Shown here piece by piece: positions 8,643-56,723 of a stretch of DNA of 64,000 nt. Numbering within the stretch: the first letter of the stretch is position 1; every line of letters begins with the position of its first letter. Under the pieces are notes generated by a model. The model did not search any database. It saw only the letters and a list, made by a program, of their open reading frames with translations, and was not told where the DNA came from. The stretch comes from Botryllus schlosseri (Eukaryota), in NCBI GenBank assembly GCA_051294905.1, contig CM119373.1:30318001-30382000 (forward strand), given 5' to 3'. Position numbers and translations under genes: made by a program.

Positions 8643-9866
8643 GTCACATGAAGAATCCTCAACGATTGCTATACTAATAGCAATAACCACGTGTACATGT
8701 ACATACGTATGCAGCAACTTCATAACACAATCTGAAAATTCATATCAGTATTATTCTCAGTATTGACATCATACCACTATAGAAACCCACGGAATGCATC
8801 TAGTATACACCCGTCAAAAATTAGGACCATTGTTAATCCGGTTAGTGTTCTGTCCGTCCACGTTATGTATTAGGCAGTTGGCAGTAGGGATGGTGTGAAC
8901 CTCTGAAAGGTTCAGGTTCGTGTGAACGCGAACCTTTTTGAAAGGTTCTGTGTGAACACGAACGTGAACCTCGTGACGTCATATTGCCAATTCCAACCCT
9001 ATCTTCCAATGAAGTGATAGCCTATATTAATGTACACCAGTGGTTCTTAACCTTGCCTCCAGCGCCCCCCAAGGGGCGCTGGCGATTTTGAAGGGGGCGG
9101 AAACGCTCAGGGGGCGATATGGGGGGCGCTGGGCTCAGGGGGCGGTATGGAGGGGGGGCGCTGGAGAAAAATGGCTTCGCAGTAGATGATGTGGTGGTAG
9201 GACATACCCTTAATGAGTATTCACAGTTAATTAACACCGAAAACTTCGTTATATATAGCCTACAAAAGACATATAGGTTTAATTGTCCATGGGCGCCTAA
9301 ATGACTGGCACCGAATTTTCCTGTCTTGGCAATTCGAACCCCAGAAGACGAATTCCATCTGGCAGGGAAAAATTATATGCCAGTGAAGAAATACCAATTT
9401 GAAATTGTGTACGTCTTTTAGTTTAGTACGATTGGGCGACACGGATATCTAAAACTAGATATTCCTGTTGGGCGATATCCCTGTTGGGCGATTCTATATT
9501 TTTTTGATAAAGCAGACAGGAGGTCACGAAATAACATCATGCAACGAAGTCATACCAACGGGTTCGCCCGCCCGAATATGTTTAAATATTAGTTACGGGC
9601 CCTACAGTTTCCAAGACACCTCACATTGTTCGCTCCACGTTTTGATGAGTCTGCGCACACTCAATAAACTCACTGCGCAGACTCTTGGACAACAGTGCGT
9701 AACGACTAAAAAAAGGTCAAAACTTCGGATTTGTTGTGCGCAACGTAAATTTTCGGAACTAGTGCACTATACACCAACATTACCCGGTCATGGTAAACAC
9801 TTTACTGACTAAGTACTTTTACACGTCATCCTTTTTTCATTTTATAATTCTCTCGAATCTATGTTT

Positions 9867-10104
9867 CATGACTCAGCATATTTCGAGTTACGAGGTTTCA
9901 GTTTTTTCCGTTTACGCCCATTACGTAAAATCCTTCACTAGATACCTATTACAAACGAAGCACCGCCATTCATTTATGCTTCTTTACATAGCTATCTTAC
10001 CATGACTCAGCATATTTCTAGTTACGAGGTTTCAGTTTTTTGCGGTTACGCCCATTACGTAAAATACTTCACTAGATACCTATGACAAACGATGCACCGC
10101 CATT
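9867..10104. repeat. Direct duplication (~105 bp, period 134) in the 3' non-coding end of the retroelement
   Basis: catgactcagcatatttc...gcaccgccatt at 9867 and again at 10001. Each copy contains a TGACTCA (AP-1-type) motif. Confidence 0.9.
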
Positions 10105-10250
10105 TTATTTTTTGTACGCCCAATACCTATCACAATGTTATTCCAAAAATTACCAAATTTGTCACACCGCATTTCAATTCTTCCCTATAACAGACTATAA
10201 AAATCACGCATTTATCTCAAAATCTCAAACACCCATTCTTACCTTCAGAT

Positions 10251-13200
10251 TTAGTCATTCTCCGTTGTGTTCCGTATTACTCTTATCGCCATCCATTGAC
10301 TTGTTCCGTTTCGTCTCCTCGTGTTCCTCATACGACTTAAGGTTCTACGTCGACGACACCTTATACAACCTACCCATAACACAATCAACAGGGCAACCAA
10401 CCCTGTTACCACCAATATTACAACCACTGGTTCCATGATAGGTATCAATTTTGCACCTTCCATAATAATCCTATCGATCAAGGATAATTCTCTTACCTTA
10501 TATCCACCTTCCATCATCACCAGTTCGTGCAGCCATCGAGTATAGTTGTAGTCTACGAAATCTGTGGTTGTCTTTCTCACGGGGGCTCTTGAAAGTCGGG
10601 AATATTCAGGTTCGGGTGATCCCAACCTTTGGTTTTCCTGCCCAGGCAGAGGTGATGCGCCAGCCATCGTTGACTCCAAGGTAGTATTCATTAGCTCGAC
10701 ACTGCTCGAGGACGAGTCGTCTTTGCCGTCCCCTGTTGAATACAAAACAGTTGTTTCGGTACTTACCCTGTGGTTGTGGTCCGGGTTTTGGTAGTCCGTC
10801 CCGATGTCGACTCCGTCATCATCTCTGGAGACCTGCAGAGCATCTGCAGTGGTCACCGGATGCACTCGCGTTGTTGTGGGTTCCTCACCACCGATTTTTG
10901 TCGTTCCCTCGGGCCGGTTACGCGTGCCACTTGGCAATTGTTGCTTCCCATGAGACACATCAGTTCGTTTAACAGTTTTATACCCCCCTTCCTGTTCAGC
11001 CGACGATTGCGATCGTTTAACTTGCACCAGCGTTGTTTGCATCCGCCATCCCAAAGTTCGATGTGGTAGATGTCTCAACGCTGTAGTCTTTGGTACTTTC
11101 GTTGTCAGCCGTTCCACGTTCACCAAAGGGACGACGGCGTCTTCCTGATCCCTTGGAGTCTCGCTCGTTTCGGTAGTGTTGGGGAGAGGGCTAGTCGTTA
11201 CATAGGCAGTTCTACTTGCCTCGGGTGTTGTATTACCGCCTACATGTCGATCGGAGGAACCCTGGTAGGAAACCGTAGTTCCTGCAAAACCGTACCAATC
11301 AGTCTCTACTAACCTTTGGTCGGTTATTTTCGTTTGCGTGGTGGTCTCGTGAGTCATTCTTCTGGTAATTATCGTCTCCGCCGATTTGTTTTGGCTCGCC
11401 AATTCCTTCCCCCGTCTCATGACTTCCTGGTGCGCGGACGGGAACCTTGGTAACGACATTGCTTCAGTGGCAGTCGTTAGCGTTTCCCAAGCCGGAGACG
11501 GTGTCGAGCGGTTGTTTGCTGGTTTCCTTTTTTCACTTGGTGTTACGCCACGCCCATTTCCCAAAGCTTCTGTGTTTGTACTGCCCACCATCATCGAAGT
11601 AGTTTGCGGAACTTCGGGGGTCCATGTGATCCTAGCGTGATGGTTTCCACGGTCATCAGTTGCGGTTAACATCACCGTTCGAGCGGTGGATCTCTCCCCC
11701 GCATTATTCCTATAGGCATATGGCGTATAGACCAGGGAACCCTCACAAAACGTCCCCCGATAGATCCATCGAGACTGAAATAACTTTTCGTCCCCCACTT
11801 CTGCCTGAATTAGCTTTTGTGTGGCCATATAATCCAGAAGTATCGTATTTATTAATTTTACTTGTTCCACTAATGTCGGTCGTAGGGTAAGGTTATACCT
11901 AGTGGATAACTCCTCAAGTTGTCCCCGCGAGACGGGTCTTTCTCGCCGCGTTTCTATGCCTCCCCTTATTCGAACCTTCAGTTGTGACAGTTGTTTCTTT
12001 ATCTCTTCTACGTATTGTACCCCAAGACTGGATAGCCAGTTTTTGATACCCCCCCGTCCATTTCCATCGGGTGTCTCCCGAAACGGGGATAGTATAAACG
12101 TTTCCCACCCTTTTGAAATCAAGCAGGAAGTTTGGTTACCCAGTATTGGTAAATGCATTTCCGTCCGCGTTCGGTTTTCAGGGGCAGCAATTTGCATTGT
12201 ACCTCGCCGGGGGTCCGCAAACACGGCCCGCCCCTCGAAAGGGTCGTATAACACTCTATTGAATATCAGGGCTGTTTTGAGATCTCCAACAGCCGTTGAA
12301 CAAACTTGCCTATCTCCCTTTAGCTCGCACCGCGAACTATTATGCAAAAGAACTGGGTAAGGGTCATACATTGTCATGCCTGAAGGTTGGGGTTTTGCCA
12401 TCGTGCGGAGGAATATCGCATCGGTCTTTCGTCCGTCGAACATCACATACCAATGTTCCGTATATATATCGTTCCTTGCTTGTAGCCATACCAGATTCTC
12501 GCTTATCTTTGGCAGAGGAGCTCTATCGGGCCATTGATTACTAGAAAAGGTTCTTCGCCTATCCGGCGGGTTTCCCATAATACCGGGATCGACTTCCTGT
12601 ATTACAAAATCTAGGGATAAGAAATTCTCAACCGGTTGTTCCCCCACGAAGTAGCACTCTATACAAATTACTCTACTCCGACGTTCTTTGTGAACAACAC
12701 AATGGCTGAATCTATTCTGTCCGATATCCCATCCTCCATGACGCCCGAACCGATAGCGACAATTTGCTTCCACCGTTACATATTGTTCCAACAGGTTTAT
12801 GATCATTGTCTTATATACGGTTAGTCGTTGTAAAGTCTCAAGGGGTAAAGAATACAAGACTCGGGTTTCTACGTACCTCCAAAGATGTATCACTCCCAGT
12901 CTGCCGTTTCGTTGGTATTTTATTTTTTGAGAATAGTAGTCAGTAGGGTTCAGATCCGGCAATATCCACGACTCAGTCCGTCTACACACACACTCCCGTT
13001 CATACGCCCAGGTTTCATCCCAATACCTGGCGTTTTGGGATCCTATGGATGATATGGGTGCCAGTAATTTGTTTAAACTTTGCGGTGCGGCTTTCAACGG
13101 ACCAAACGCCGAGTCGTCAACCTGTATCTGATAGCGACGTCGAATGTCCTTTCGAGGCCAGTCCCCTCCTAACATAAAAAGCCGTGACAAGGGTACCCTT

Positions 13201-13388
13201 TGCGGCTTTGGGGGGACGTCGAAAGGTCTCCATCCCGTAAAATTAAAGTCGTCGATGGACCCCACGGTCATGGCAGATAAGGGTAGTGGGTTTTCGCCAG
13301 TTTGGGCTTTCACAAAACAAGCCCACTGGATTAACAACAGTAATCTTTGTAGTCCTTTCCATTTGTACAGGTAGTTAATTATTGGCAT
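10251..13388 (-). CDS. Second envelope-type glycoprotein (Env surface-domain paralogue + mucin stalk + TM), 1045 aa
   Basis: Signal-like N-terminus. Blocks align with Env (RYW....ER.C.CRR, D.(I/V)IQE(I/V)D, YD..PV, LK.A...V.(F/Y)DP). S/T-rich stalk, TM VVVILVVTGLVALLIVLWVGCI and basic tail. No furin-plus-fusion-peptide motif. Confidence 0.85.
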   Translation of the reverse strand: MPIINYLYKWKGLQRLLLLIQWACFVKAQTGENPLPLSAMTVGSIDDFNFTGWRPFDVPPKPQRVPLSRLFMLGGDWPRKDIRRRYQIQVDDSAFGPLKAAPQSLNKLLAPISSIGSQNARYWDETWAYERECVCRRTESWILPDLNPTDYYSQKIKYQRNGRLGVIHLWRYVETRVLYSLPLETLQRLTVYKTMIINLLEQYVTVEANCRYRFGRHGGWDIGQNRFSHCVVHKERRSRVICIECYFVGEQPVENFLSLDFVIQEVDPGIMGNPPDRRRTFSSNQWPDRAPLPKISENLVWLQARNDIYTEHWYVMFDGRKTDAIFLRTMAKPQPSGMTMYDPYPVLLHNSSRCELKGDRQVCSTAVGDLKTALIFNRVLYDPFEGRAVFADPRRGTMQIAAPENRTRTEMHLPILGNQTSCLISKGWETFILSPFRETPDGNGRGGIKNWLSSLGVQYVEEIKKQLSQLKVRIRGGIETRRERPVSRGQLEELSTRYNLTLRPTLVEQVKLINTILLDYMATQKLIQAEVGDEKLFQSRWIYRGTFCEGSLVYTPYAYRNNAGERSTARTVMLTATDDRGNHHARITWTPEVPQTTSMMVGSTNTEALGNGRGVTPSEKRKPANNRSTPSPAWETLTTATEAMSLPRFPSAHQEVMRRGKELASQNKSAETIITRRMTHETTTQTKITDQRLVETDWYGFAGTTVSYQGSSDRHVGGNTTPEASRTAYVTTSPLPNTTETSETPRDQEDAVVPLVNVERLTTKVPKTTALRHLPHRTLGWRMQTTLVQVKRSQSSAEQEGGYKTVKRTDVSHGKQQLPSGTRNRPEGTTKIGGEEPTTTRVHPVTTADALQVSRDDDGVDIGTDYQNPDHNHRVSTETTVLYSTGDGKDDSSSSSVELMNTTLESTMAGASPLPGQENQRLGSPEPEYSRLSRAPVRKTTTDFVDYNYTRWLHELVMMEGGYKVRELSLIDRIIMEGAKLIPIMEPVVVILVVTGLVALLIVLWVGCIRCRRRRTLSRMRNTRRRNGTSQWMAIRVIRNTTEND

Positions 13389-13468
13389 ATTAATTTAACG
13401 TGAAAATCTGTAATTCATATAGTCGTGTTTAGTTAAGCATGAGGGTTAAGAGAGCTTCGGCGGAGAGG

Positions 13469-16042
13469 TTACCGTCGCACTATGGGCCTGCGTTTTTTGG
13501 AGTAAGATGGTGTCGACGTTATGTACATTGTAAGTTGAGAGTTAGTGTTCCGCCTCTGTACGCTAGATTTTAACTTGGGACAGCATAGGCTGTGATACCT
13601 GACACAACAGAATAAGATAATCACCGCACCCAGTACAAGTCCCAAGGGGAGGAGGATGGATCCGAGGCCCGAAAAAATGCCACTCAGTCCACTTCCAAAT
13701 AGACCTCCGATTGCTCCAAGTCCCTTTTGTAGGAGGTTACCGGCACCGTTCCCGACCGATTCTATCAGACTTCCGGCACCGTTCGCCATTTCTTTTATCG
13801 TTTTGCCAAAGTTCTTCATAAATTCTTCCCCCCCAGCAAACTCGAAGGGGGCTACTGACACATTCTCGTAGCGCCAGTCGGAGATATTTACGAACACACT
13901 TCGGTTCAGGTCCTCCTTCCACACCTGTATACTGAGATCCACTTCTTCTTGAGCCTGGTTTAGACGAAGTCTGTTGGCTCGGAGTTTACCACTGATGTCG
14001 TTTGTCTCATTTACATACGTATCTTTATAGGCGGATAACTGCTGAGCATGCTCTCGCACCCGCAATGTCCCTTTCCGAATCTGTGTGAGATAGACCTTAC
14101 TCGAATCGAATATGGACTTTCCGGTCAAATTAGCCAATTCTTTCATGACCAAGCGGTCGACGGCAAGTTCAGCGTCGCTCACCTCTGTGAAACTTTGAAA
14201 CTGAGCGAGGGTAATGGTAGCCTGTCGTAATATCATTTGTCGGTTTTTCTCCACCATCTTCTGCATCCACACCAATCGTCTGTCCGTCAGTGATGCCCTT
14301 ACCTCCATGTTTTCAACCAATCGGTCCAGCTTTTGTTGTTGCGCTGTTTGGATTTGGGAGAGTTCGTTTATCTTTTTCCCTAGTTCGGTTGATCTCTCCG
14401 TAGCCTGGATCATTCTGTCGTTGATTTGATAACTCAGGTCCTCAGTTTCTTTATGCAGTTGGGAAGATACAGTTGCGACAACAGCGACAACTGACACGAC
14501 GGCAAAGATTAGTGCCAGTAGGCCGAAGAGGAATCGTTTACGTCTACGTTTCCCCCCAATCCTCCTATTATTACGTGCGATGTCCCCTTTTATTTCTATA
14601 GGCCCTCCCGGAAAACGGGGTCGGTTATGCTCAGGGTCGAAGTGTACCTGATCCCAAAAGGCCGCCTTCAACTGAGACCCCCCGACCGGATCCTGACAGC
14701 CGCTACCACTTATCCGCCCCTGACACTTGGGATCATCCGCAACCAAAGAGGGGTGCTTCCGCCAAACGGGTAGTATGTCGTAAGGTGCGGATGGTCTTTC
14801 GGAAGGTCCGTCAAACAGGTTGTCCCAATCCAGGCCTTGGTCATCTCGACCTTCCCAGTTTGGTAAGGACGCCTGTATCCATCTAATCCTTCGAGGAAAC
14901 TTCGTTGTGGGCAAATCCCCCCATCTACTCGTGTTCCCGATCGGCCAGAGATTACACGATGGGGGATGTCCAATGTCGCGATGGCCTTTCCCTTTCAATT
15001 GCTGGAAATCTTGCCAAAGGTATTCATAGTTTTCCTGGGTGATCAGCCCTGATGTATTTCGGCAGTTTAGCATGTGGTACCACTCACGTTCCCACGCAGA
15101 ATCCGCACGGACTGTATCTATTTCCTGTATTATTATATCCGCTTGACTCGGTTCCAAAGCAGAGATTATCCCTGTGATATCGCAAAATACGCATTTGCCA
15201 CGAGACCCTGATGATGACGATACTAAGCGTCTGGTTGTCGTGCCGGTCTTCAAGTCATAGGTCGTAGAGTAAGTTTTGGACCAAAGTCGATTTTCCGGCC
15301 AGCAGTGTGCAATACTCGAGCTACTGGCGTTGTATTTATTCCATTGATCTACTTGGGTCCAGTTCCACGTATCTTTTGTCATGCGCTCTGTTCTGCAAGT
15401 CGATCTCACCGCCGAAAAACCCGCGAAGGTTCGTAACATGATCAATTTGAATTTGGTCATCGCCATTATAGTATCGTTCACATGGGAATCACCGTCCACG
15501 CCAAACGCAGACTTCCATCTCTTCCTAGTGGCTTCCCAGGTCTCTTCCCAAAACCACCGTATCCTGACCCCATGCCCTATTGGGCGTACGAACACAGTTT
15601 CTTGGTCAAGAACGGCAAATGTTAGGTTTGGCGAAATTTGGCCTAGTTTTCGTCGGCATAGGCAGGTTCGTTCAAAGTCCCGTACATTCGACCAATATCG
15701 CCCTTGCGGGAACGCCATTTGCTGCAATGACACCCGTTCGGCCACCACGTAACCGAAAGATTCACTATGAAAGAGTGTTGGTCGCCTATACACGTGACGA
15801 TTCCCTGTCTTATTGAAAGCGCTCATTAGGTCGTAGGTTTCCCATTGCGTATTATTCAGCCGAACCCAGTCGTCAGGTAGTGAGCCGTTGAATTCACCCA
15901 GGGTACCCTGAGTAAAGGTTCGGGCCCTGTTTGCTACAGTATCTCCGGATCTTGGCACGAAGTCCGCCGCCTCAGACAACAAGCAATCAGATGTGCAACT
16001 GAAACCAATAACGACAGGCAGAATATAAATAGCGTAGTCCAT
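13469..16042 (-). CDS. env: Envelope fusion glycoprotein, class-I-like
   Basis: First in-frame ATG (MDYAIYILPVVIGFS) is signal-like. Many N-x-S/T sequons. Polybasic KRRRKR (14534-14551) is followed directly by hydrophobic FLFGLLALIFAVVSVVAVVATVS. Heptad-rich helical region, Gly-rich pre-TM segment, TM ILLPLGLVLGAVIILFCCV and short tail. Confidence 0.9.
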   Translation of the reverse strand: MDYAIYILPVVIGFSCTSDCLLSEAADFVPRSGDTVANRARTFTQGTLGEFNGSLPDDWVRLNNTQWETYDLMSAFNKTGNRHVYRRPTLFHSESFGYVVAERVSLQQMAFPQGRYWSNVRDFERTCLCRRKLGQISPNLTFAVLDQETVFVRPIGHGVRIRWFWEETWEATRKRWKSAFGVDGDSHVNDTIMAMTKFKLIMLRTFAGFSAVRSTCRTERMTKDTWNWTQVDQWNKYNASSSSIAHCWPENRLWSKTYSTTYDLKTGTTTRRLVSSSSGSRGKCVFCDITGIISALEPSQADIIIQEIDTVRADSAWEREWYHMLNCRNTSGLITQENYEYLWQDFQQLKGKGHRDIGHPPSCNLWPIGNTSRWGDLPTTKFPRRIRWIQASLPNWEGRDDQGLDWDNLFDGPSERPSAPYDILPVWRKHPSLVADDPKCQGRISGSGCQDPVGGSQLKAAFWDQVHFDPEHNRPRFPGGPIEIKGDIARNNRRIGGKRRRKRFLFGLLALIFAVVSVVAVVATVSSQLHKETEDLSYQINDRMIQATERSTELGKKINELSQIQTAQQQKLDRLVENMEVRASLTDRRLVWMQKMVEKNRQMILRQATITLAQFQSFTEVSDAELAVDRLVMKELANLTGKSIFDSSKVYLTQIRKGTLRVREHAQQLSAYKDTYVNETNDISGKLRANRLRLNQAQEEVDLSIQVWKEDLNRSVFVNISDWRYENVSVAPFEFAGGEEFMKNFGKTIKEMANGAGSLIESVGNGAGNLLQKGLGAIGGLFGSGLSGIFSGLGSILLPLGLVLGAVIILFCCVRYHSLCCPKLKSSVQRRNTNSQLTMYITSTPSYSKKRRPIVRR

Positions 16043-16188
16043 TGAGGTGGTATAGGCGTCGGTCCCCAATGCATAGGCTTACTATTCTATATTGAATATG
16101 ATTTAATTATTGTCTGCAAAAATAGAAACATACATTGTCCGGTCTCTGGTTAACTTCCTTTCTTTATGGTGAAAGGCTACTCTGGGCT

Positions 16189-17238
16189 TTACTGAGGATT
16201 ACCTTGTGTGTCAGGAATCTGATCACTAGGGTCGTCATTATTATACCGCGGGTCAAGAGATATCGTTTTCAACAGAGCCCCAAACCTTTTTTTACGGGGG
16301 TATCTTCTCTTCCAAAGCCACTCCCCCACATAATCGGCTAGTAAATGACGTGCTAGACCCCTCGATCTGTGTAAATGATATTTCAGCGAGCTCCAGCAAG
16401 CCTCTAAATCATTGGTATGAACGCCCTGGGCAGATTTAAACGTGGTGGCGTGGTCAACTGATCCATGTTTATAGCCCTGCCCCCAACTTTCAATGCCCTT
16501 ATACGATGGACAGCCATCTGTCAGAATGGTCGAACCTCTGGCTACATTCTTAATTATAAGTCTTTTCAGAACGTCCGCTGTTCGGTCAGATGTGATCTCC
16601 ACAAACATGTCACCGGTACCTCGGTCCAGGCCACCGAAAGCCCAGACAGCCTTCACTGCTTGTTGACCGCTACCAGCTGCCCGTTTCCGTTTGGCCAAGT
16701 GGGTTTCGTCCAGGATTACAGTTCGGCCAACCCCGCCTAATTTCCGTTTACGTCTTTGTATGTAAGCAGAGCACATCTTGCGCAGTTGTCCAGACCATTC
16801 TACCGTAGTACGTGCGCTGATCTCGGCCTCATGGGCCATTTGAATTTGTAGAGAGTCTTGGGCCCAAAAATAACTCAATACTAGTAGCTGGGGCAATCCA
16901 AGTTTGCTCTTTGAAAAAAATGAGTACTTGCGGATAGTAGCAGTGGTCCTACAAGATGAGCACCTCCATCTCCACCCATCCGAAATTCTCGCGGTAGTCC
17001 GTTCTTCTTTCATCAAACTCGAACATTTTCTGCAAGTCATTTGTTTTCTCAGTAGACCCCGACTTCGTAAAAAAGGTATGCAATCACGTGTATGAGGTAA
17101 GGCTCCCGTTTCCACCAATCGCAGTACGTTGTAATCCTCGACGAAGGAGTCTGAAAGGTAATAGAGAAAAGTACAAGTTCCTCCAACGATCGATGGCTTT
17201 ATAACAGTTAAATCTTGATGGCTGCATCGTCCCGCATC
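16189..17238 (-). CDS. Merlin/IS1595 (ISXO2-like) DDE transposase, in frame with pol
   Basis: Zn-ribbon CRKC...WRCSSC, HTH-like segment, VILDETHL, WAFGGLDR, ILTDGCPSY, H.SVDH and VHTNDLEACWS. The frame is open from the pol TAG (17239-17241) to the stop at 16189, with no ATG near its start. Confidence 0.9.
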   Translation of the reverse strand, partial: DAGRCSHQDLTVIKPSIVGGTCTFLYYLSDSFVEDYNVLRLVETGALPHTRDCIPFLRSRGLLRKQMTCRKCSSLMKEERTTARISDGWRWRCSSCRTTATIRKYSFFSKSKLGLPQLLVLSYFWAQDSLQIQMAHEAEISARTTVEWSGQLRKMCSAYIQRRKRKLGGVGRTVILDETHLAKRKRAAGSGQQAVKAVWAFGGLDRGTGDMFVEITSDRTADVLKRLIIKNVARGSTILTDGCPSYKGIESWGQGYKHGSVDHATTFKSAQGVHTNDLEACWSSLKYHLHRSRGLARHLLADYVGEWLWKRRYPRKKRFGALLKTISLDPRYNNDDPSDQIPDTQGNPQ

Positions 17239-20200
17239 CTAGGCCATGTTCTCCATCAGTATACACTCTGACGGTATAGGCCCCTCGCACAATACTACTT
17301 CGCGATTATGCGACTGTAAGAGTCGTAGACCTATCCTTCTGAGATCGCTCGCTCTCATTCTCAGAACTGTTTTACGCCCACGTGTCTTTGTTGTGTCAAC
17401 TTTACTCAAATGGACGAACCGCCGGTCCATCCTGCGTAATTCGGTATTCATGATTTGACGGGCAGTTTCATCAGTCGTTATGTGATACAGCATGCCATCG
17501 CCCAAGTATTCTTCGTACGGAGGTGGCATCCCTTTGGTGTGCCCGTGTGCTGCAGCCAGGCCTTCATTTGACATCACTGCCCTGTTGCAATTTGCCATGA
17601 TATCTTTGATTTTAGTTATCCCGAGGTCTTGTCGCAGCTTGTCATTGATTATTCCGTGAACTTCCTTCCAGGAGTGGTATCCATCGACAGAGTTTGCGCA
17701 ATACTCGTGTCGACAGTGGAACATCAGTGCTCGCTGTATTTTCTCTTGTTGAGATTCCTTTTGCCCCGGGAGGGTGGCCCAGACATGCGGATCATCATTC
17801 CCCGCCGCCATTTCCATCCAATAGGATCGGGACAATCCATCCGACGTAAACACTTGTAACGTGCTTAAATGGATTACCTCTTTTATCTGAAATCCGGAGA
17901 GATGGTTTAGCCACCTTTGAATCAATGGCTTTGGACTCGGGTTTTTCGCTTCATCCGTCATTCTTTTCAGGAGCCCAAAAACTCCCATGTTGTCAGTAAT
18001 TATAGTGAAGGGTAAGGCGCGCAGCATCGACTGCCATTTCTCCACCGAATCCTTCAGGGCTTTAAGCTCTTTGGTGCATGGGTCATAGGCTTTCGCCGTC
18101 GAAGTTACCCACTTTTGACTGTAGTAAGCGATCGGATACACCTCTTTGAAAGGGGGTCTTTCCCCCACATCCGTTTGGAAAATTACGGAGCCGAATCCTA
18201 CATCTGATGCATCAGTTTCCACGAAAATAGGAAGTCCTGGATCCAGATGATACAATACCTTGGTACTGTCGAGTGAGGCTTGAGCTATTTTGTAGTCTTG
18301 CAATAATTCTTCGGTCCAAAGCACCGGTGTTATTTTTCCTCGAGTCGCTGGGACTTTTCCCGTTAGCGCATCAAATTTTGCCAACTTCAAGCTCAACTCT
18401 GGGATGTGCTCCGAGATGTAGCGTAGAGCGCCAATCCATCCACGTAATTCATATATATTTCGGGGTGGTGAAAGCTCCCGCAGAGCCCTTATCCTCTCGG
18501 GCTGGACCTCGATTTCTTTTCCCGTCAAGGTCGCTCCTAGCAGATTTACTCTCCGTTTTCCAATAAAGCATTTATTGATGCTGAGCGTCAATTTCATTTT
18601 AGCAAGTTGTTCAAATACCAGCCGCAGAAGCAGCAAATGGTCTTCTACCGTTTTTGTGCTAAGGAAAATGTCGTCTATGTAGGCCTCCATAGGCGTCGCA
18701 TTCTCCTCATCCGATCGGCCATTTTGCTTCATGTGTTGGCGATACTTTTCCGTGATGGGTTTCACCACGCATTCTTGCATGTTAGCGCTCCAAAGAGCCA
18801 CAGCGGTCTTCAATCCCATCACCATCTTGCGCCACCTTACGTGCATTCCTTTGATTGCTATCCCCACATATTGCTTGGATCTTTCCGTGATATCCATGTG
18901 GAAGTAGGCTTTCTTCAAATCTAGAAGAGAGAGTACTTCTCTACCCTGGGCGAGTTGCTTTACGTCTGGTACTAACGGTGGAGGGACCTCGATTGACTTT
19001 ATAGCAGCATTCAGGGGCTGGAGATTCTGTACGACTCTCCATGATTGCTTCCACCCGTCCTCTTGCTTCTGTCTTTCATTCATTTTTTGTGGGACGACAA
19101 AGATGGCCAGTTTCCACTCGGCAAATCCTTGCTCGATTATCCCCAGGTCCAAGAAGTTGTCCACTGCTTCTTTTAACGCCTTCGCCTGGCCCTCCCCTTT
19201 CAGATTATAAGGTCCAGAAACAAAAGGCTTAGTCGAGGGATCCTTGAGTTCTATGTCACACTTATACTTCATGGCTTGAGGGGCTCGTAAGTGGCCGCAC
19301 AGGTCCTCTAGTTCAGCTGCGAAAGGCTCATAGACGGCTTTCCAAACTTCGTCGGCAATGATGGTATTTTCCGGGGTCGTTAGATCAGGAGGTTTGTATG
19401 GAAGTTTCGCTAGTGCTACCGATTGTGCACAGAGATTTTCGAGCTCCGTCTTAACGCTAGGACTGGTACTTTGTTGTAAGGTGTACGTGGTAACAGGGCC
19501 AATTATCGGCCGATGCGAATCACGTGAAAAACGGGGTTTTGGTGTTGGTGGAGAGGGGGCGAGGTTCTTCGTTGTCAGCGGGGATTCCCTACCTATCCAA
19601 TCTGACCTCTGAACTCGGTGCGTGCCCACACCTACCGTCACGCCGACGGACTCAATCTCCGCCGGGGGCCCTGTTTCTGGGGAGACGTGCATCTTAAAAT
19701 CCCCAGACTCCTTGTCGGACGGTCCTGGACATACGTCCGGTTGACCAACAATAGCTGCTTCGTTTGAACCCTTTGGGAAGTTACTCATAACTGTGGCTGT
19801 CGTCCTGCATCTTTGGGCCGAATTGTTACAGTTATTCGGACAAGTGCATCCACGAGAGCTTTCAGGACCAGTTTTCTCGTACAGGTCCTTATTTACGTCA
19901 GCCGGGATTCCGCGCTCGACGTCTTCATTAATGGTGCCAGCAGGGATTCCTGTCTCGACACTAGGGGTTTCCCGTAGGTTTTTTTCGACGTTAGTGGTAT
20001 TTACCAACCCGTCGTCCGCGCCAGTGGCGATTGCCATCTCGACACTTGCGCCAGCGGCGACGGCCGGCAATGATGACCGGCGCGCCGACTCGACGCTTAT
20101 CTGATTTGCAGCTTCCATCAACCCATCGTCGGTAGCAGCGTTGCAAGGACTGTTTCCGACTCTGGTTCCATCCCGTCGATCGCACGAGATCTCGTCATGT

Positions 20201-20709
20201 AGTGTTACTAAAGACAACTCTTCGTTTGCATTAGACGGAGTTTTGAATTCAGTCGTTATGTTCGGTAATTGTTGTACCTGATCAATCCATTTTAACCCAA
20301 TAATATTGAGAGGGACTCCTTTCCCGGTTGCAAATGGAACCGGTAGTCCATCGAAATCAATTATTACCAAGGAGTCAACGTGGGAAGAGCCCCCTATGCC
20401 GCGTAATTTCATGTCTAAGGGTTGTCGCTCCTCCCAGCTTCGTGGGTATTTGGTCTTAACAACACTTTTCATTATTAAATTGGGGATGCTTCCCGTGTCG
20501 GCCAAGAATTTAGTTTCCGTTGTGGTGTCAACCAAGTACAAGAGCCGACCGCCGAATAACTCCGTAAAGTCTGGCTGTAGTGGGTTATCCGGTGTATCAA
20601 GAAATGTAAATAGGGGTAGAGAAGCATTATGTACAGTTTTTGCGTGTTGGGGTAATAAGTTATCTGGGAGCTGATTTACCGGATCAATCAGCACCCCCAG
20701 TCGTTTTTT
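17239..20709 (-). CDS. pol: Pol polyprotein: aspartic protease, spacer, reverse transcriptase, RNase H, Tpt1/KptA-like domain; no integrase
   Basis: FLADTGS and NIIG (retropepsin). LDLKKAYFHM, MGLKTA, YIDDI and KC.IG...V.LLG (RT). TDASD.GFG, AYYS, ELKAL, TDN and DGLSR (RNase H). C-terminal CRH...HGHT...LYHIT...RRFVHLS...GPIP. No ATG start; entered by -1 frameshift from gag. Confidence 0.95.
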   Translation of the reverse strand, partial: KKRLGVLIDPVNQLPDNLLPQHAKTVHNASLPLFTFLDTPDNPLQPDFTELFGGRLLYLVDTTTETKFLADTGSIPNLIMKSVVKTKYPRSWEERQPLDMKLRGIGGSSHVDSLVIIDFDGLPVPFATGKGVPLNIIGLKWIDQVQQLPNITTEFKTPSNANEELSLVTLHDEISCDRRDGTRVGNSPCNAATDDGLMEAANQISVESARRSSLPAVAAGASVEMAIATGADDGLVNTTNVEKNLRETPSVETGIPAGTINEDVERGIPADVNKDLYEKTGPESSRGCTCPNNCNNSAQRCRTTATVMSNFPKGSNEAAIVGQPDVCPGPSDKESGDFKMHVSPETGPPAEIESVGVTVGVGTHRVQRSDWIGRESPLTTKNLAPSPPTPKPRFSRDSHRPIIGPVTTYTLQQSTSPSVKTELENLCAQSVALAKLPYKPPDLTTPENTIIADEVWKAVYEPFAAELEDLCGHLRAPQAMKYKCDIELKDPSTKPFVSGPYNLKGEGQAKALKEAVDNFLDLGIIEQGFAEWKLAIFVVPQKMNERQKQEDGWKQSWRVVQNLQPLNAAIKSIEVPPPLVPDVKQLAQGREVLSLLDLKKAYFHMDITERSKQYVGIAIKGMHVRWRKMVMGLKTAVALWSANMQECVVKPITEKYRQHMKQNGRSDEENATPMEAYIDDIFLSTKTVEDHLLLLRLVFEQLAKMKLTLSINKCFIGKRRVNLLGATLTGKEIEVQPERIRALRELSPPRNIYELRGWIGALRYISEHIPELSLKLAKFDALTGKVPATRGKITPVLWTEELLQDYKIAQASLDSTKVLYHLDPGLPIFVETDASDVGFGSVIFQTDVGERPPFKEVYPIAYYSQKWVTSTAKAYDPCTKELKALKDSVEKWQSMLRALPFTIITDNMGVFGLLKRMTDEAKNPSPKPLIQRWLNHLSGFQIKEVIHLSTLQVFTSDGLSRSYWMEMAAGNDDPHVWATLPGQKESQQEKIQRALMFHCRHEYCANSVDGYHSWKEVHGIINDKLRQDLGITKIKDIMANCNRAVMSNEGLAAAHGHTKGMPPPYEEYLGDGMLYHITTDETARQIMNTELRRMDRRFVHLSKVDTTKTRGRKTVLRMRASDLRRIGLRLLQSHNREVVLCEGPIPSECILMENMA
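20664..20709 (-). promoter_or_regulatory. -1 programmed ribosomal frameshift signal (gag-pol)
   Basis: A_AAA_AAC heptamer in gag phase (20709-20703). It is followed by the hairpin CUGGG-GGU-GCUGAUU / AAUCAGC-U-CCCAG (20700-20664). pol is in the -1 frame. Confidence 0.85.
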
Positions 20710-23546
20710 GAGAGTCTCAAGCCTTGTTCTAGTTCCTCATCCGTCCAATGCGAGGCGTCATAGCGACGTGGAGGACGGCGATATAGCGGTTCCGTCCAGG
20801 CCACTCGGCTATTGCCCTGGTTCGGTTGTTCAGGTGGACCCTGAGGACCCCACTGATCCCTATCATGCCAGTGGGTTCTATCTCTATTTTTTGGCCTAGA
20901 GTCATAATAGGCCTCGCACAAGGCAGTTCTCTGTGTCAGAGAGGGAGAACCTTGGGTGGCCAGGTATCGGTCGAGGTCCGGGACCGTCAATATGTTATTC
21001 CTTGCAAGGAAAGGCTCCCAGTTGCGTTTTGTGGACTCCTTAACGCGTGGGGGTACCGGTCGTATTCGTTTGCGAACTACCCAACCTAAGGTATCATCCT
21101 TGGCAATCACCTCCTCATTTAGCCAAAGCACGAATTTTGCCACGCAATTACGGGATTGGTGTCCCGGGGCCTTACAATAATAACATACGGATAAGGACTG
21201 CCCCTGAGGGGGGTTCAGATACAAGCCTAATGGGGCGAAGATGTTGGGGTTCCCCAGAAAATTATATCTCTCACCTTGGCTCTCCGCGATGCGGAGGGCT
21301 TCCTGACTGCTAGACGGCGTGATTTCCTGGCTGTCCCCGCCGATTCCAGAGTCCTGTGTATTCATCATTCGAGGTCTTCGGTTCGAAGTACTTGGCCCCT
21401 GACTTGTCTGAGGAGATCTGGAGTTCCGTGTTGGTGGAACGTTCGGTCCATTCGATGCGTTGCGCCCATTTTGTGTTCGGGAAGGTTTGGCCCTGGGAGC
21501 CGGGCCCTGTCTGCCAAACCCATTTCCACTTATTACATTGGTAGGAAAACGGTTGGTCTTTGCGCCGCGAGGAGGGCCACGTCGTGGCTGCGAAGCTTGC
21601 CCGGCGCTGACGGGCTGCCGTGGCGACATATTCCCGGACGGTCTGGGTGGTGTCCCTTCGATCATGTGTGGAGGTTGTCGGGGTGAGGGTGGTTGCACCA
21701 TCGGAGGTGGTGATGTAGTCGGTGGAGGTGGAGTGTTTAATCGCCCATCTTCACCCCCGTGAGTAGGGTAACTGTGCATCATGGGTCCCGCCGGCTGAAC
21801 ATTATATATATGTACAGGTGGTAGGGGCGACGTTGTTTCGCGCGTCTTTCTGACTTCCCGAGCGGTGGGACGCACCTCTTGTTCATCCAAAAACTCAGAA
21901 TTCCAGTACAACTGTAAATCCTCCGCCACGTCTTGCCAGGGCCTGCTATCCCATCCCCGCATTAGCAGTCTAAGTGCTTCTGGTAATCGTTGTCTTAGGT
22001 TTCGGAAAAGCCGCAGCCCATCCGGATTCTCCTTGATTTCAGCCTCCATGTCTATCTCTAGTTGTTTTAGGGCGCTGTTCAACAGCGGAAGAGGTTCGTC
22101 TTCCCACTGATAATTCCTACGGAAATCGTTGATGACCTTTTCATTGTTAACCAAGCCTTGCGGGTTGGATAGCGACAATGATTTCATGACCGAGACCCAT
22201 TTCGCATTTCCCGAGTTGGTGTTGAAGAAATTCCCTAGCTGATTAGCTTGTTTGAGGCGGCCCGCACTTCGCAACTTCTTCTGCATGGCATTGGCCAGGA
22301 TTATATCTGTATCAGTGTCACCCTCGCCGTGTCGTATACGTTTCATCGTATTAGCCATCCACTTTAGAAGGGGCATATCCCCAGGGTCCATCATTAGCTG
22401 AAGCATCTCCTTTTCCGACTGGAACCTTTCGGGCGTAGTTAACACCGGGTTCACGGCATCATTCCGTGGTTGATCTCGTGGAAGTCTCGGCCTCCCTTCG
22501 CTCTCTCTCGGAGTAGATGCGTATCGAGGTAACCTGAGGTACTCAGAGATGTCTGACATATTCTCTTCAGGTTCGATTGGGTTGGGCCGACCAGAGTCTC
22601 GCTGAAGCATGCGTGTGGTCTCCCGAATGGCCTCCCGCGCCTCCGTTATTTGTCTACCCAATCTGTCCAATTGGGCATCAGTATCTTCACCAGAGTCCTC
22701 AGGATCGTCGCTACCGTCTTGTCGGTAGTTCGTTCTCCCTTCTTGAAAGGTAACGCGTCTTGTTGGAGTGCTGGCCGCACCTTGTGTCCTGGTTCGGGTT
22801 CCTTCAGTTGCCCGTTGATCGCCGAGCCATGCCCCGAGCCGTTCTCGAGCGCGTGCATAGCCATCGTCCGAATCGGTGTCGGTTCCGGTTTCCCTCAGCC
22901 GGTATAGACTGGGTGTATCTGCTAGGTTCCCCCTCCGTCGTCCGTGGCGTGTCCCATTTCGAACCGGGAAGCATGGAGTCGTTCCTGGGCGGGAATCTGA
23001 CGGCGACTCCGGCTTGGAACCTGGTAACGTAGGGTAGACTGCCGTCACAGTATGGCAATCCAGGCCCTTTTCGACTGTAAACGTGGGTAGGGGCGCTGTC
23101 GCCCTGGGCGGTTCCCCAACGGGTGGGTCATACGCCGGTGGAGGTGCTGTAGCCATTACGGACAGAGAAGGTGGAGTCGGTGGTTTATCCCCAACCACCT
23201 GTGCATGGGCTTTGCCCAGCTCAAATTCCGATTTCAAGATTTCATTGAGGACTTCAGTAGAGACTTTCCCGCCGACCTTCGAAGTGGCATCACATACCGC
23301 TTTCAGGTCGGCTTGAGCTCGTCTGACTTCCTTTTTGGCCTTTTCCAGACCCTTCATTGTCTCGGGCAGAGTTGATTTGACCTCTTTTAGTACTTTCGTT
23401 TGGTCAGCCACGTCTTTTGCCAACTGTCTTTCTTGTTGTCTGACGTCTTCGTGGCGTTTTTGCGTGGCTTTCAGCAGCTTGATGCCCTGCTCGAGCTCGC
23501 CTGCCGCCTTTGACGACTTACTCTTCTTTTTAAATAATTTTAGCAT
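20688..23546 (-). CDS. gag: Gag-like polyprotein
   Basis: Basic N-terminus, coiled coil, PPPAY late-domain-type motif, central helical (capsid-like) region, Pro-rich region and CYYCKAPGHQSRNC (CX2CX4HX4C) knuckle. Lies directly upstream of pol. First ATG at 23546. Confidence 0.9.
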   Translation of the reverse strand: MLKLFKKKSKSSKAAGELEQGIKLLKATQKRHEDVRQQERQLAKDVADQTKVLKEVKSTLPETMKGLEKAKKEVRRAQADLKAVCDATSKVGGKVSTEVLNEILKSEFELGKAHAQVVGDKPPTPPSLSVMATAPPPAYDPPVGEPPRATAPLPTFTVEKGLDCHTVTAVYPTLPGSKPESPSDSRPGTTPCFPVRNGTRHGRRRGNLADTPSLYRLRETGTDTDSDDGYARARERLGAWLGDQRATEGTRTRTQGAASTPTRRVTFQEGRTNYRQDGSDDPEDSGEDTDAQLDRLGRQITEAREAIRETTRMLQRDSGRPNPIEPEENMSDISEYLRLPRYASTPRESEGRPRLPRDQPRNDAVNPVLTTPERFQSEKEMLQLMMDPGDMPLLKWMANTMKRIRHGEGDTDTDIILANAMQKKLRSAGRLKQANQLGNFFNTNSGNAKWVSVMKSLSLSNPQGLVNNEKVINDFRRNYQWEDEPLPLLNSALKQLEIDMEAEIKENPDGLRLFRNLRQRLPEALRLLMRGWDSRPWQDVAEDLQLYWNSEFLDEQEVRPTAREVRKTRETTSPLPPVHIYNVQPAGPMMHSYPTHGGEDGRLNTPPPPTTSPPPMVQPPSPRQPPHMIEGTPPRPSGNMSPRQPVSAGQASQPRRGPPRGAKTNRFPTNVISGNGFGRQGPAPRAKPSRTQNGRNASNGPNVPPTRNSRSPQTSQGPSTSNRRPRMMNTQDSGIGGDSQEITPSSSQEALRIAESQGERYNFLGNPNIFAPLGLYLNPPQGQSLSVCYYCKAPGHQSRNCVAKFVLWLNEEVIAKDDTLGWVVRKRIRPVPPRVKESTKRNWEPFLARNNILTVPDLDRYLATQGSPSLTQRTALCEAYYDSRPKNRDRTHWHDRDQWGPQGPPEQPNQGNSRVAWTEPLYRRPPRRYDASHWTDEELEQGLRLSKNDWGC

Positions 23547-23599
23547 TTTTCGCACAGTTCATGTAACTTTTGATTGCCTGTATTTTGGTCCCGTACCTT

Positions 23600-23935
23600 T
23601 TATTGGCTAGGGGGAGTACCGTTACGGATTAGATTACCCGCGGACGTGGTTTTGTTGTTCTCGATCACTCGCCCTCGAGTTGCAGGTACGGAATATCTTC
23701 CGAAGAAAACTGGGTCGGTGTCGTTGGCGATTACCACAGCAAATCCGTTGCGTGGGACAGTGAGGGCTTCGGCCGTTGTAGTGACGTCGTTAGAGAGGTC
23801 TTCAGGAGTTGTCGTAGGAAAGAATACCGGCACGAGGTGTACGTAGACCGATGCCAATGTTATAAGCAGAGATATCACAGAAGTGATTACCGTCACGCCG
23901 AGCACGATTTTCACGAGGGTCGTCCTTGCACACAT
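23600..23935 (-). CDS. Small leader-encoded membrane protein (111 aa)
   Basis: ATG-initiated ORF between PBS and gag. One hydrophobic helix, then a Thr-rich tail with NDT, NKT and NGT sequons. Not in frame with gag. Confidence 0.6.
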   Translation of the reverse strand: MCARTTLVKIVLGVTVITSVISLLITLASVYVHLVPVFFPTTTPEDLSNDVTTTAEALTVPRNGFAVVIANDTDPVFFGRYSVPATRGRVIENNKTTSAGNLIRNGTPPSQ

Positions 23936-23964
23936 TAATAGGTCAATGTTTTTACACCGGAAAT

Positions 23965-23982
23965 ATCCCAGTGGTGCCTCCA
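23965..23982 (-). promoter_or_regulatory. Primer-binding site complementary to tRNA-Thr
   Basis: Minus strand TGGAGGCACCACTGGGAT. 17/18 match to the 3' end of animal tRNA-Thr(AGU), ...AUCCCAGCGGUGCCUCCA, recalled from the vertebrate sequence. Canonical position upstream of gag. Confidence 0.8.
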
Positions 23983-24199
23983 GTAGTGTCTTTATAGTGC
24001 AGCCCCAGTAACGATTGTTATGCGGGTCGTCTACACTTGGTTCGGATTACTTCGCGGTGAGGAATTGACCTTCTATTGCACTGTATTGTCCAGACGACGT
24101 CCGTAGATATTGATTGAAGTAGCGGTAGTTGCGATAGTTGCAGTAGTTGTATCTTTGAGCATCAGCCAATGACCCTTAGGTCCAGTGTTCTAATCTAGC

Positions 24200-24610
24200 C
24201 TTATATAACGTGTAAATAAGCCTTACTTAATACAACCAAATACTCCAATCATTATCATGCAGACAGAATGAGGTATCTAAGCAAAACTCGGTTAATATTG
24301 GCATATAGAATATCCATCAATTATAACACAAGATAAAGCTTAAACCTATTCATATTCATGCACGATTAAATGTATTTTAAATACTCCAAGGTTTGTTTTC
24401 GCATACAAACAATGCGACGGCCTTTCCTGCCGAAGTCGTATCTTTGAGGGTTTGTTAACACATATAAATAATGTGACGGCCTTTCCTGCCGTAAAATAGC
24501 TCCATGGGTTTGTTTACACATATAATACATGTGACGGCCTGTCCTGCCGTAAAGCAGCTCCAAGGTTAGTTTGCACATATGAGTATGTGCCGGCCTTTCC
24601 TGCCGTAAAG
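24200..24610 (-). promoter_or_regulatory. Putative 5' LTR/U3 region: TATA-like box plus four ~58-bp tandem repeats
   Basis: Minus-strand TATATAA near 24202-24208. Tandem units (24384-24610) with core atg(c/t)gacggcctttcctgccg. Promoter function is inferred from position only. Confidence 0.55.
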
Positions 24611-25218
24611 TTCATTCATGACCTATCGCTACATGATACACTATTCAATCACAATAGTCATGCACGAACCAATTTTTTAATTACAGTCTGTTATATCTCT
24701 GCGTTCCTTTGTATCGGTGTATATAAGCTTTTTATTCATTCGTACGTACCGTGTCTCACAGACAATCGATCTGATTTACCACGAATCTTTAACTCTACAC
24801 ATGCTCCAATAAGGTAGAGGTTCCTAGCTTAGTCTAAGGGTGCGTAGCTAGTTATAACGCCTAACTCCGGGAGGTTCCAACATTAAGGACTTTGTATCGT
24901 TGACCCGATTAACATGGCCATATGCCAATTAAAGTGCACTTGATGATACTACCCTTAACAAGGTGTTGCTTACTCGAACACTGTTAGATACCCAGGGTCC
25001 CTTTTACGGGTTTCTGGAGAAATCCCTAACCATTTCTAATCCTAAGCTTCTATCCCGCTAGGGTGAAGGGTCCCGACGCTAATATAGGGCGTGGTCGGTG
25101 TATAACGCCTATGTAAAGCCTACAGACATAGTACTCGCTATCATATTACTGTAGTAACAACCAATCATTCACATTATAAATGTTCACTAACCCATACACA
25201 TATCTACGTCATAAAATG

Positions 25219-26100
25219 TTAGCGCCATTTTAAAGCAACCTGATGGTATTGATCAAAGATACAGTGAAGGCAGCGCTTGAACAAAATGGCGTCACTATAC
25301 AATAATACATCAAAGTAACCATCTCGTGAGAATACCAATGTCCTGTTATGACTCACGCGTCTCGTCATCATGCCGCAGATTGATTCATGTCGTTGTTCGT
25401 CAAACGCACCCTCTCCGACCGCCATCATCGTACGTTCGGAACATATTTGGCAAACGCACGCTTGGGTACTCCGTCTCGTGCATCTATTTCGAACCCGGTT
25501 TCTTCAACTCCCTTGATAATGAAACGATTCTTCTGCGTATCTTTCCTTGATTTTGCAGCCGTCTTGATCGTCTCCTTTCTCCGCTGTCTTCAACGCGACT
25601 TCTTGCGGGCATTGTTTGGCACGTTCCAACCTTTGGTTCACTGGTCCTTGCTGAGCAGTGATTGATAGTGCCGGATTTCCTCTCATCTCGTTCATTTGAC
25701 TTCATTAAGCCCTAGATTCTATCGAGGGGAGCAGTTTTTCGGGACTGTCGAATAGTAATTTTAGAGTTGGTACCACCAAGCCGTTCATTAATGCCAACAG
25801 AATGTCCAGTTCATATCGATACTCTCATGCCATTTCATCACTTCAGTCAGTCTTATTATGGCCTCATTGCGAGCAGGGCAATAAATCTTTGGCATGTTTT
25901 CGAGACGCTCTTCTCGTCATACCAGTTGTAGATACATTCGATGCGCACAGGGAGGACATTAAATACACACATGTCGGAATATTGCGTCATTTGCTATCGT
26001 AACGTTGCCGAAATACAATAATTTGCATGCACGTACTGATCATGGTGCCATAAGTGCACTTGTCAGACACATCCATTTCGTGAAACGAATGTGCAAACAA
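25219..26100 (-). pseudogene. Decayed intronless coding-like region of unknown identity
   Basis: Several short minus-strand ORF pieces in different frames that read as one interrupted protein. No motif recognised. Confidence 0.3.
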
Positions 26101-56515: not shown

Positions 56516-56723
56516 TGGTGTGAACCTCTGAAAGGTTCAGGTTCGTGTGAACGCGAACCTTTTTGAAAGGTTCTGTGTGAACACGAACGTGAACCTCGTG
56601 ACGTCAAGTGACGTCATATTGCTAATTCCAACCCTATCCTTCAATGAAATGATAGCCTTGTACACGATACCTATAGTGACGACTCGGGCAACATAGCGTC
56701 ACAATGCTGAAGTATATATTGAC

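Follow-up and report, generated by a model that had tools for sequence, protein, structure and literature searches.

A predicted fusion glycoprotein and its diverged, stalked paralogue encoded in tandem by a virus-like retroelement of Botryllus schlosseri

Why does a retroelement carry two membrane glycoprotein genes side by side, and are the two products related? The question arises from a 64,000-nt stretch of Botryllus schlosseri DNA (GCA_051294905.1, contig CM119373.1, positions 30,318,001 to 30,382,000), hereafter the window, in whose coordinates all positions are given. A preliminary description of this locus had noted an Env with furin site, fusion peptide, heptads and membrane anchor, followed by a 1045-aa glycoprotein whose N-terminal approximately 400 residues parallel the Env surface part, but which lacks polybasic site and fusion peptide and instead has an S/T-rich stalk and its own anchor. 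Our analysis confirms this observation. The proposed interpretation, duplication of a retroviral env followed by subfunctionalisation, is only partly supported, since the duplication holds, whereas the framing as a retrovirus with two Envs does not find support. The element is organized as follows, with residues numbered from the ORF starts; the Env ORF opens at 16069 (TTG) and has its first ATG at 16042.

24379..24609 (no strand assigned), four tandem copies of a 58-nt unit upstream of the coding block; TATA-like motifs lie at 23996 and 24207 on the minus strand
23600..23935 (minus), small upstream ORF (111 aa) with an N-terminal hydrophobic segment, uncertain member of the element
20688..23555 (minus), gag-like ORF (955 aa) with a CCHC zinc knuckle
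17239..20694 (minus), pol with reverse transcriptase, RNase H and a C-terminal Tpt1/KptA-like domain, without integrase
16189..17118 (minus), IS1595/Merlin-type DDE transposase ORF with an N-terminal zinc finger, in the position where an integrase would be expected
13469..16042 (minus), Env-type glycoprotein gene (857 aa from the first ATG)
14546..15973 (minus), Env surface (head) part, residues 33-508
14534..14545 (minus), Env polybasic cleavage motif, residues 509-512
14453..14533 (minus), Env hydrophobic fusion-peptide-like segment, residues 513-539
13691..14452 (minus), Env predicted helical ectodomain of the fusion subunit, residues 540-793
13577..13690 (minus), Env membrane anchor, residues 794-831
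10251..13388 (minus), second glycoprotein gene (ORF2, 1045 aa), starting 80 nt after the env stop
12129..13304 (minus), ORF2 head domain, residues 29-420, paralogous to the Env surface part
11709..12128 (minus), ORF2 post-head region, residues 421-560, without polybasic site or hydrophobic peptide, a possible remnant of the fusion subunit
10554..11708 (minus), ORF2 S/T/P-rich mucin-like stalk, residues 561-945
10353..10469 (minus), ORF2 membrane anchor, residues 974-1012, followed by a 33-aa basic tail
9867..10109 (no strand assigned), region downstream of ORF2 with AATAAA at 10109 (minus strand) and two copies of a 104-nt repeat 134 nt apart; the 3' boundary of the element lies between 9626 and 10250

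All six ORFs of the element are open from start to stop, and we counted no internal stops or frameshifts. The small upstream ORF resembles the element in composition but matches no family, and no other copy of the element was found in the window.

Env shows the layout of a class I fusion protein. A signal peptide with a hydrophobic N-terminal segment (13-32) is followed by the head, a single R-x-K/R-R site at 509-512 and, at once, a strongly hydrophobic segment (510-539; Kyte-Doolittle maximum 3.03), and the protein ends with a C-terminal anchor (794-831). It carries 14 N-glycosylation sequons and no cysteine between residues 459 and 820, and hence no cysteine loop in the fusion subunit ectodomain. 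AlphaFold2 with a 42-sequence alignment predicts long helices at 514-627 and 678-721, a shorter one at 632-649, a beta-hairpin at 658-677 and an anchor helix at 803-829, with pLDDT 80-96 for the head core (about 120-320) but only moderate pLDDT for the long helices, while a first model made with 3 sequences was uninformative (pLDDT 36). Heptad a/d positions are enriched in hydrophobic residues (0.54 against 0.29-0.32 elsewhere).

ORF2 also has type I topology as read from sequence, with an N-terminal signal peptide and a C-terminal anchor, but its only strongly hydrophobic segment is 974-1012 (Kyte-Doolittle maximum 3.23) and its only R-x-K/R-R matches lie in the cytoplasmic tail. The S+T+P fraction reaches 0.30-0.34 over residues 600-900, no tandem repeats were found in the stalk, and the composition of the gene is that of the rest of the element.

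The two heads are homologous. BLASTP gives 37 bits (E 5e-6, 20% identity over 443 columns) and contains all three segment pairs on which the parallel had originally been based. Smith-Waterman alignment of Env 33-508 against ORF2 29-420 scores 91, against 37 +/- 5 for 1000 shuffles (z 10.9, Gumbel P 6e-7), and z rises to 13.2 with BLOSUM45. Profile-profile comparison yields a probability of 99.8% (E 1.9e-30), and eight shared cysteine columns are kept in 7-9 of 9 family members. Taken as a whole, the C-terminal parts are not similar (z 0.5). However, ORF2 516-560 aligns with the helix and hairpin region Env 635-677 (E 2.5e-4, reversed control 0.35), so that the copy probably derives from a whole env gene and not only from its surface part, a point which we treat as tentative. 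The post-head similarity is weak and not significant pairwise (z 1.5).

An insignificant alignment of the heads, or a second ORF decayed or absent in relatives, had been named beforehand as outcomes that would speak against the proposal; the head alignment is significant, and the second ORF is neither decayed nor unique to this locus. An exhaustive protein search returned about 40 relatives, of which about 35 are Env-type, and two, here P0013 (722 aa) and P0040 (a fragment), are proteins of the ORF2 type in other assemblies, which argues against a local accident or decay product. A word search with the ORF2 head, for proteins of 575-1829 aa only, was blank. ORF2 and P0013 align collinearly over ORF2 37-602 (E 3e-26, 23% identity) and share a post-head region (P0013 398-575, z 9.7) that Env lacks at the pairwise level (z 1.5-1.7). 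P0013 likewise has no polybasic site and a single, C-terminal hydrophobic segment, although its stalk is far shorter, and P0040, the closer relative, matches across the junction between head and post-head region, again without a polybasic site. As R512 is nearly invariant in 16 Env-type sequences, its absence from the ORF2 type is a real difference in design. At head level, P0013 bridges the two proteins, with Smith-Waterman scores of 208 against the Env head and 220 against the ORF2 head, while Env against ORF2 scores 91, and is as close to one as to the other. In a neighbour-joining tree ORF2 and P0013 group apart from all Env-type heads (99% bootstrap), but head distances are near saturation (0.79-0.90) and long-branch attraction could produce this grouping. 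Within the family we excluded P0037, a repetitive dockerin protein, and found no second head copy in the long N-terminal extensions of P0006 and P0009.

Neither glycoprotein matches any Pfam family or solved structure significantly, and the same holds for Pfam searches of the relatives. A GDSL hit of P0012 was rejected because it lies in the fusion subunit, and the single Foamy_virus_ENV hit (P0025) because it covers only the membrane anchor and is below the cut-off; there is therefore no match to a retroviral envelope family. PF00523, reported for the Env of lokiretroviruses (PMC7947760), gave no hit even at E <= 10 in any of 42 members. A fold search with the Env model found nothing at E <= 0.001. 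Hemagglutinin-esterases and HEF head both result lists, yet only at E 0.004-0.3 (best 0.02 in PDB and 0.004 in a viral library) and TM-scores of 0.1-0.2, HA2 chains recur at E 0.03-0.3 over one helical stretch, and a head-only profile finds nothing, so that these hits are leads only. The G-D/N-S motif of GDSL/SGNH hydrolases is missing from ORF2 and occurs once in Env, at residue 193, where the alignment places a gap in ORF2; an esterase serine motif is thus not shared by the two proteins.

The carrier is not an ordinary retrovirus. Three methods, including blastn at word size 7 and a self-comparison of the whole window, revealed no direct repeat flanking the coding block and hence no LTRs, and the flanking DNA is not CpG-depleted. 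Pol contains a reverse transcriptase and RNase H of the Ty3/retrovirus/caulimovirus type (PF00078, PF17917, PF17919), with solved-structure matches to a caulimovirus polyprotein, Ty3 and foamy virus PR-RT. An rve-type integrase is absent from pol and from the following ORF, and also from the three close pol relatives (P0043-P0045), which form a separate group at 38-47% identity, while all more distant hits, starting at about 25%, have it. Instead, pol ends in a domain with real domain-level similarity to the RNA 2'-phosphotransferase Tpt1/KptA (NCBIfam E 6.6e-13; solved structure 9ld3, E 1e-5 over nearly its whole length), although scores are below the curated cut-offs; PF01885 is annotated in two relatives. 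The next ORF, in the same reading frame as pol, matches the IS1595/Merlin transposase domain (PF12762, E 1e-12, 48.8 bits against a cut-off of 27; NCBIfam transpos_IS1595, E 3e-20, 73 bits against a cut-off of 75, covering 2-212 of 215 positions). No inverted repeats surround this ORF, and at the ends of the element there is only a chance-level 15-nt imperfect inverted match (E 0.67) without target duplication. The CCHC knuckle of the gag-like ORF is visible but scores 20.4 bits against a cut-off of 20.8, searches of solved structures gave no capsid match, and no protease family was called in this pol, while P0044 carries PF00077.

The readings as a lokiretrovirus or a Troyka element were rejected. 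Env-carrying LTR retroelements and lokiretroviruses (PMC7947760, PMC13524379) share the gag, pol (RT and RNase H) and env order with a cleavable fusion glycoprotein, but lokiretroviruses have LTRs, an integrase and an Env matching PF00523, none of which is present here, and Troyka elements have LTRs. In the literature searched, no paper links Tpt1 or IS1595 to a retroelement, and the eLife survey of env-carrying retrotransposons mentions no hemagglutinin, second env or transposase.

What, then, could the second protein do? The analysis itself establishes that, at this locus, two related type I membrane glycoproteins are encoded in tandem, that Env has a class I layout, and that ORF2 is a paralogue which keeps the head with its conserved cysteines, and probably a short piece of the fusion subunit, lacks cleavage site and fusion peptide and places the head on a mucin-like stalk of about 385 residues with its own anchor. 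That ORF2 cannot fuse membranes, and any role in receptor binding, shielding or exclusion, is inferred from sequence alone. We favour a second surface glycoprotein with a divided role, most likely first contact or attachment with the head held well above the membrane, while Env alone would carry out fusion; this would be a split attachment/fusion system that arose by duplication of env rather than by recruitment of an unrelated protein. We give this reading a probability of roughly 0.5. Against it, only two ORF2-type relatives were found as compared with about 35 Env-type ones; either many relatives lack the gene or it evolves too fast to be detected. In addition, stalk length is not conserved, and the cytoplasmic tails of Env and ORF2 share no significant similarity (z 0.6), so that joint incorporation into particles has no sequence support.

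Among the alternatives, receptor interference is the strongest, though still unlikely: ORF2 would bind the same cell-surface partner as the Env head, inside or on the producing cell, and block re-entry, in the way env-derived genes protect cells against related retroviruses. Keeping the head fold and all eight cysteines while losing only the fusion machinery is the design expected of a binder that must not fuse. On the other hand, the two heads are only about 20% identical, ORF2-type proteins occur at up to about 23% mutual identity, and a long stalk projecting the head outwards is not needed for interference. Less likely still, ORF2 might regulate Env, joining it through the retained helix and hairpin piece in mixed oligomers or as a partner that holds Env inactive or triggers it. 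The alignment of ORF2 516-560 with Env 635-677 and a heptad bias in the region before it fit this idea, but the similarity is weak.

A shield or decoy function, in which the heavily glycosylated stalk covers the particle or cell surface or a shed form absorbs host recognition without specific binding by the head, is about equally doubtful. The S/T/P-rich stalk and the N-glycosylation sequons would suit it, but the parts conserved across ORF2, P0013 and P0040 are the head and the post-head region. Finally, a functionless duplicate that happens still to be open in this young copy is very improbable despite the small number of ORF2-type relatives, given the 1045-codon open frame, the full-length relative of the same architecture at 23% identity and the retention of the cysteines and of a D-P motif.

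In comparison to other systems, Env resembles the class I glycoproteins cleaved at a polybasic site (retroviral Env, orthomyxovirus HA/HEF, paramyxovirus F) in its layout, but matches none of these families by Pfam or by sequence searches of solved structures. The split pairs of paramyxoviruses (HN/H/G and F), pneumoviruses (mucin-like G and F) and isaviruses (HE and F) likewise comprise two adjacent membrane glycoprotein genes of which only one has fusion machinery and the other a globular head, here on a mucin-like stalk; however, the two proteins of those viruses are not known to be detectable sequence paralogues, and the present element replicates by reverse transcription. The nidovirus hemagglutinin-esterase, regarded as an HEF-like protein without the fusion part and encoded beside the spike, is a precedent for a head-only derivative serving as an accessory surface protein, but here both copies sit in one genome. 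Env-derived receptor-interference genes of vertebrate hosts also keep the binding part without fusion activity, yet they are host-retained or truncated copies, whereas ORF2 lies inside an intact element, has its own stalk and anchor and has relatives at up to about 23% identity.

A more far-reaching reading, which we regard as possible but tentative, is that the locus belongs to an undescribed lineage of enveloped reverse-transcribing elements without LTRs and retroviral integrase, carrying an IS1595/Merlin-type transposase and a Tpt1-like domain instead, whose envelope system evolved by duplication of a class I fusion glycoprotein, possibly HA/HEF-like, into a fusion protein and a stalked, non-fusogenic partner.

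Enveloped viruses with separate attachment and fusion proteins are, to our knowledge, combinations of two proteins without detectable sequence homology. Here, the partner arose from the fusion protein itself and both copies are still in one intact genome, and therefore the route from one multifunctional glycoprotein to a divided system can be read directly from sequence, within a glycoprotein family that has about 40 members in public data and neither a Pfam family nor a solved structure. Besides, the carrier element joins a retrovirus-like gag-pol to a transposase of a DNA-transposon family and an RNA 2'-phosphotransferase-like domain, without LTRs, which bears on how reverse-transcribing elements exchange their integration modules.

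Our data show that a block of higher G+C (0.47-0.52, against 0.37-0.40 in the flanks) runs from about 10.1 to 24.4 kb and holds six uninterrupted ORFs on the minus strand, in which we counted no internal stops or frameshifts:

23600-23935 (minus), small membrane-protein ORF, 111 aa
20688-23555 (minus), gag-like ORF, 955 aa
17239-20694 (minus), pol, 1151 aa
16189-17118 (minus), DDE transposase ORF, 309 aa
13469-16069 (minus), Env, 866 aa from the ORF start, first ATG at 16042
10251-13388 (minus), second glycoprotein (ORF2), 1045 aa

The base composition by codon position is alike in all of them. The gag and pol ORFs overlap by 7 nt in different frames, the pol stop codon is followed in the same frame by the DDE ORF, and ORF2 starts 80 nt after the env stop. 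The small ORF upstream of gag has an N-terminal hydrophobic segment and a composition like that of the element, but no family match.

The preliminary description had claimed an Env with furin site, fusion peptide, heptads and membrane anchor, followed by a related glycoprotein without polybasic site and fusion peptide but with a long S/T-rich stalk and an anchor of its own, and this observation is confirmed. Env has a hydrophobic N-terminal segment, one R-x-K/R-R site at residues 509-512 which is directly followed by a strongly hydrophobic stretch to 539, predicted long helices 514-627 and 678-721 with a hairpin between them and a heptad bias, and an anchor at 794-831. In contrast, ORF2 has a signal-like N-terminus, no polybasic site outside its cytoplasmic tail and no internal hydrophobic segment, but an S/T/P-rich stretch (fraction 0.30-0.34) of roughly 385 residues and an anchor at 974-1012. 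All three pairs of similar segments cited in that description are located inside the BLASTP alignment of the two proteins (37 bits, E 5e-6), and the similarity is well beyond chance, as the Smith-Waterman score is 91 against 37 +/- 5 in 1000 shuffles (z 10.9, P about 6e-7), with a z of 13.2 using BLOSUM45. In addition, eight cysteine columns are shared, with Env 136, 138, 225, 256, 293, 296, 449 and 458 corresponding to ORF2 133, 135, 210, 230, 242, 245, 354 and 363, and these are kept in 7-9 of 9 family heads.

A word search found nothing for the ORF2 head among proteins of 575-1829 aa, and for Env a single 78%-identical fragment (P0001). An exhaustive profile search based on Env, P0001 and the ORF2 head found 42 proteins, 13 of them below 1e-30. 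One of the 42 hits (P0037) is a spurious repeat protein. Most of the rest are Env-type: those that span the junction generally have a polybasic site followed by a hydrophobic peptide, and the full-length ones a C-terminal anchor (P0002, P0003, P0006, P0009, P0011, P0016, P0017, P0039 and others). Two of these Env-type relatives, P0006 and P0009, have an extra N-terminal region of about 300-350 residues before the head, which is not a second head copy and has no Pfam match.

Two further proteins are ORF2-type. P0013 (722 aa) has the head, no polybasic site, no internal hydrophobic segment and a single C-terminal anchor, and aligns collinearly with ORF2 37-602 (E 3e-26), whereas P0040 (180 aa) is 36% identical to ORF2 334-475, across the junction where Env has its cleavage site, and has no such site either. 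The region after the head is clearly homologous between ORF2 and P0013 (z 9.7), while neither matches the Env fusion subunit pairwise (z 1.5-1.7). P0013 also bridges the paralogues, as its head scores 208 against the Env head and 220 against the ORF2 head. Profile-profile comparison of the ORF2 type with the Env type gives 99.8% probability and E 1.9e-30 over ORF2 97-560 and Env 107-677. Restricted to the post-head parts, ORF2 516-560 aligns with Env 635-677 at E 2.5e-4, against 0.35 for a reversed control, and the duplicate therefore probably derives from a whole env gene, although we treat this as tentative. A neighbour-joining tree of heads groups ORF2 with P0013 (99% bootstrap), apart from all Env-type heads. 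However, the distances are near saturation, and we therefore rest orthology mainly on the shared architecture and the shared post-head region.

With regard to known glycoproteins, no Pfam family matches any of the 42 members, including the retroviral, foamy virus and paramyxovirus F0 families, and no solved structure matches by sequence. Using the 42-sequence alignment, the predicted Env model reached a mean pLDDT of 62, with a head core (about 120-320) at 80-96. Fold searches with this model found nothing at E <= 0.001, and both lists are headed by nidovirus hemagglutinin-esterases and influenza C/D-like HEF proteins (best E 0.02 and 0.004, TM-scores 0.1-0.2). Besides, a family profile picks up many influenza HA2 chains at E 0.03-0.3, always over the same helical stretch. 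These two weak signals point the same way but do not amount to membership, and a search with the pattern G-D/N-S showed that no esterase serine motif is shared.

In the carrier element, pol has reverse transcriptase and RNase H of the Ty3/retrovirus/caulimovirus kind but no rve integrase, and its last 170 residues (17239-17751, minus strand) form a Tpt1/KptA-like RNA 2'-phosphotransferase domain (NCBIfam E 6.6e-13; structure 9ld3, E 1e-5 over nearly its full length), although the family scores are below the curated cut-offs. To our knowledge, no retroelement has been described with this domain. The next ORF, which sits where an integrase would be, is an IS1595/Merlin-type DDE transposase with a zinc finger (Pfam E 1e-12, NCBIfam E 3e-20) and has no inverted repeats of its own. 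The three closest pol relatives (38-47% identity) also lack rve, and two of them carry the Tpt1 family, whereas all further hits are ordinary Ty3/gypsy polyproteins at about 25% identity.

In the regions 9600-10250 and 23556-25600, there are no LTRs or significant terminal inverted repeats around the otherwise intact gag-pol-env block. The only inverted match is an imperfect one of 15 nt (10186-10200 with 24681-24695, E 0.67) without a target duplication. Unrelated repeat arrays lie on the two sides of the coding block, namely four tandem copies of a 58-nt unit upstream (24379-24609) and two copies of a 104-nt repeat, 134 nt apart, downstream (9867-10104). TATA-like motifs are also found upstream, and an AATAAA lies 142 nt after ORF2. 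A host repeat family occurs in several pieces at 8885-9625 and again at 56510-59469 (83-91% identity), which marks the outer limit of the element on its 3' side and places its 3' end between 9626 and 10250. Elsewhere in the window, two direct copies of 2786 nt at 99.9% identity (53730-56515 and 61215-64000) lie 7.5 kb apart, the second running to the end of the window, and these could be the terminal repeats of another element or a recent duplication. CpG observed/expected is about 0.9-1.0 in both flanks and element, so that the host does not look like a CpG-depleted vertebrate genome, and no tRNA or Rfam family was found in the 64 kb. Based on these data, the element is not a lokiretrovirus or Troyka, and we found no description of such an element in the literature searched.

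The interpretation put forward in the preliminary description, an env duplication followed by a division of roles, is partly supported. What our analysis demonstrates is the presence of two paralogous type I glycoproteins, of which only one has fusion machinery, and the recurrence of the second type in two other database proteins, whereas the function of ORF2 is inferred from sequence alone. Several alternatives have to be weighed in this context. Receptor interference by ORF2 is possible but rather unlikely, and we consider it doubtful that ORF2 regulates Env through the tentatively retained helix and hairpin piece or, to a similar degree, that it acts as a shield or decoy, while a functionless duplicate is very improbable. 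We favour, with a probability of roughly 0.5, the view that ORF2 is a non-fusogenic surface protein whose head, raised on a mucin-like stalk, would make first contact or attachment, while Env would do the fusing.
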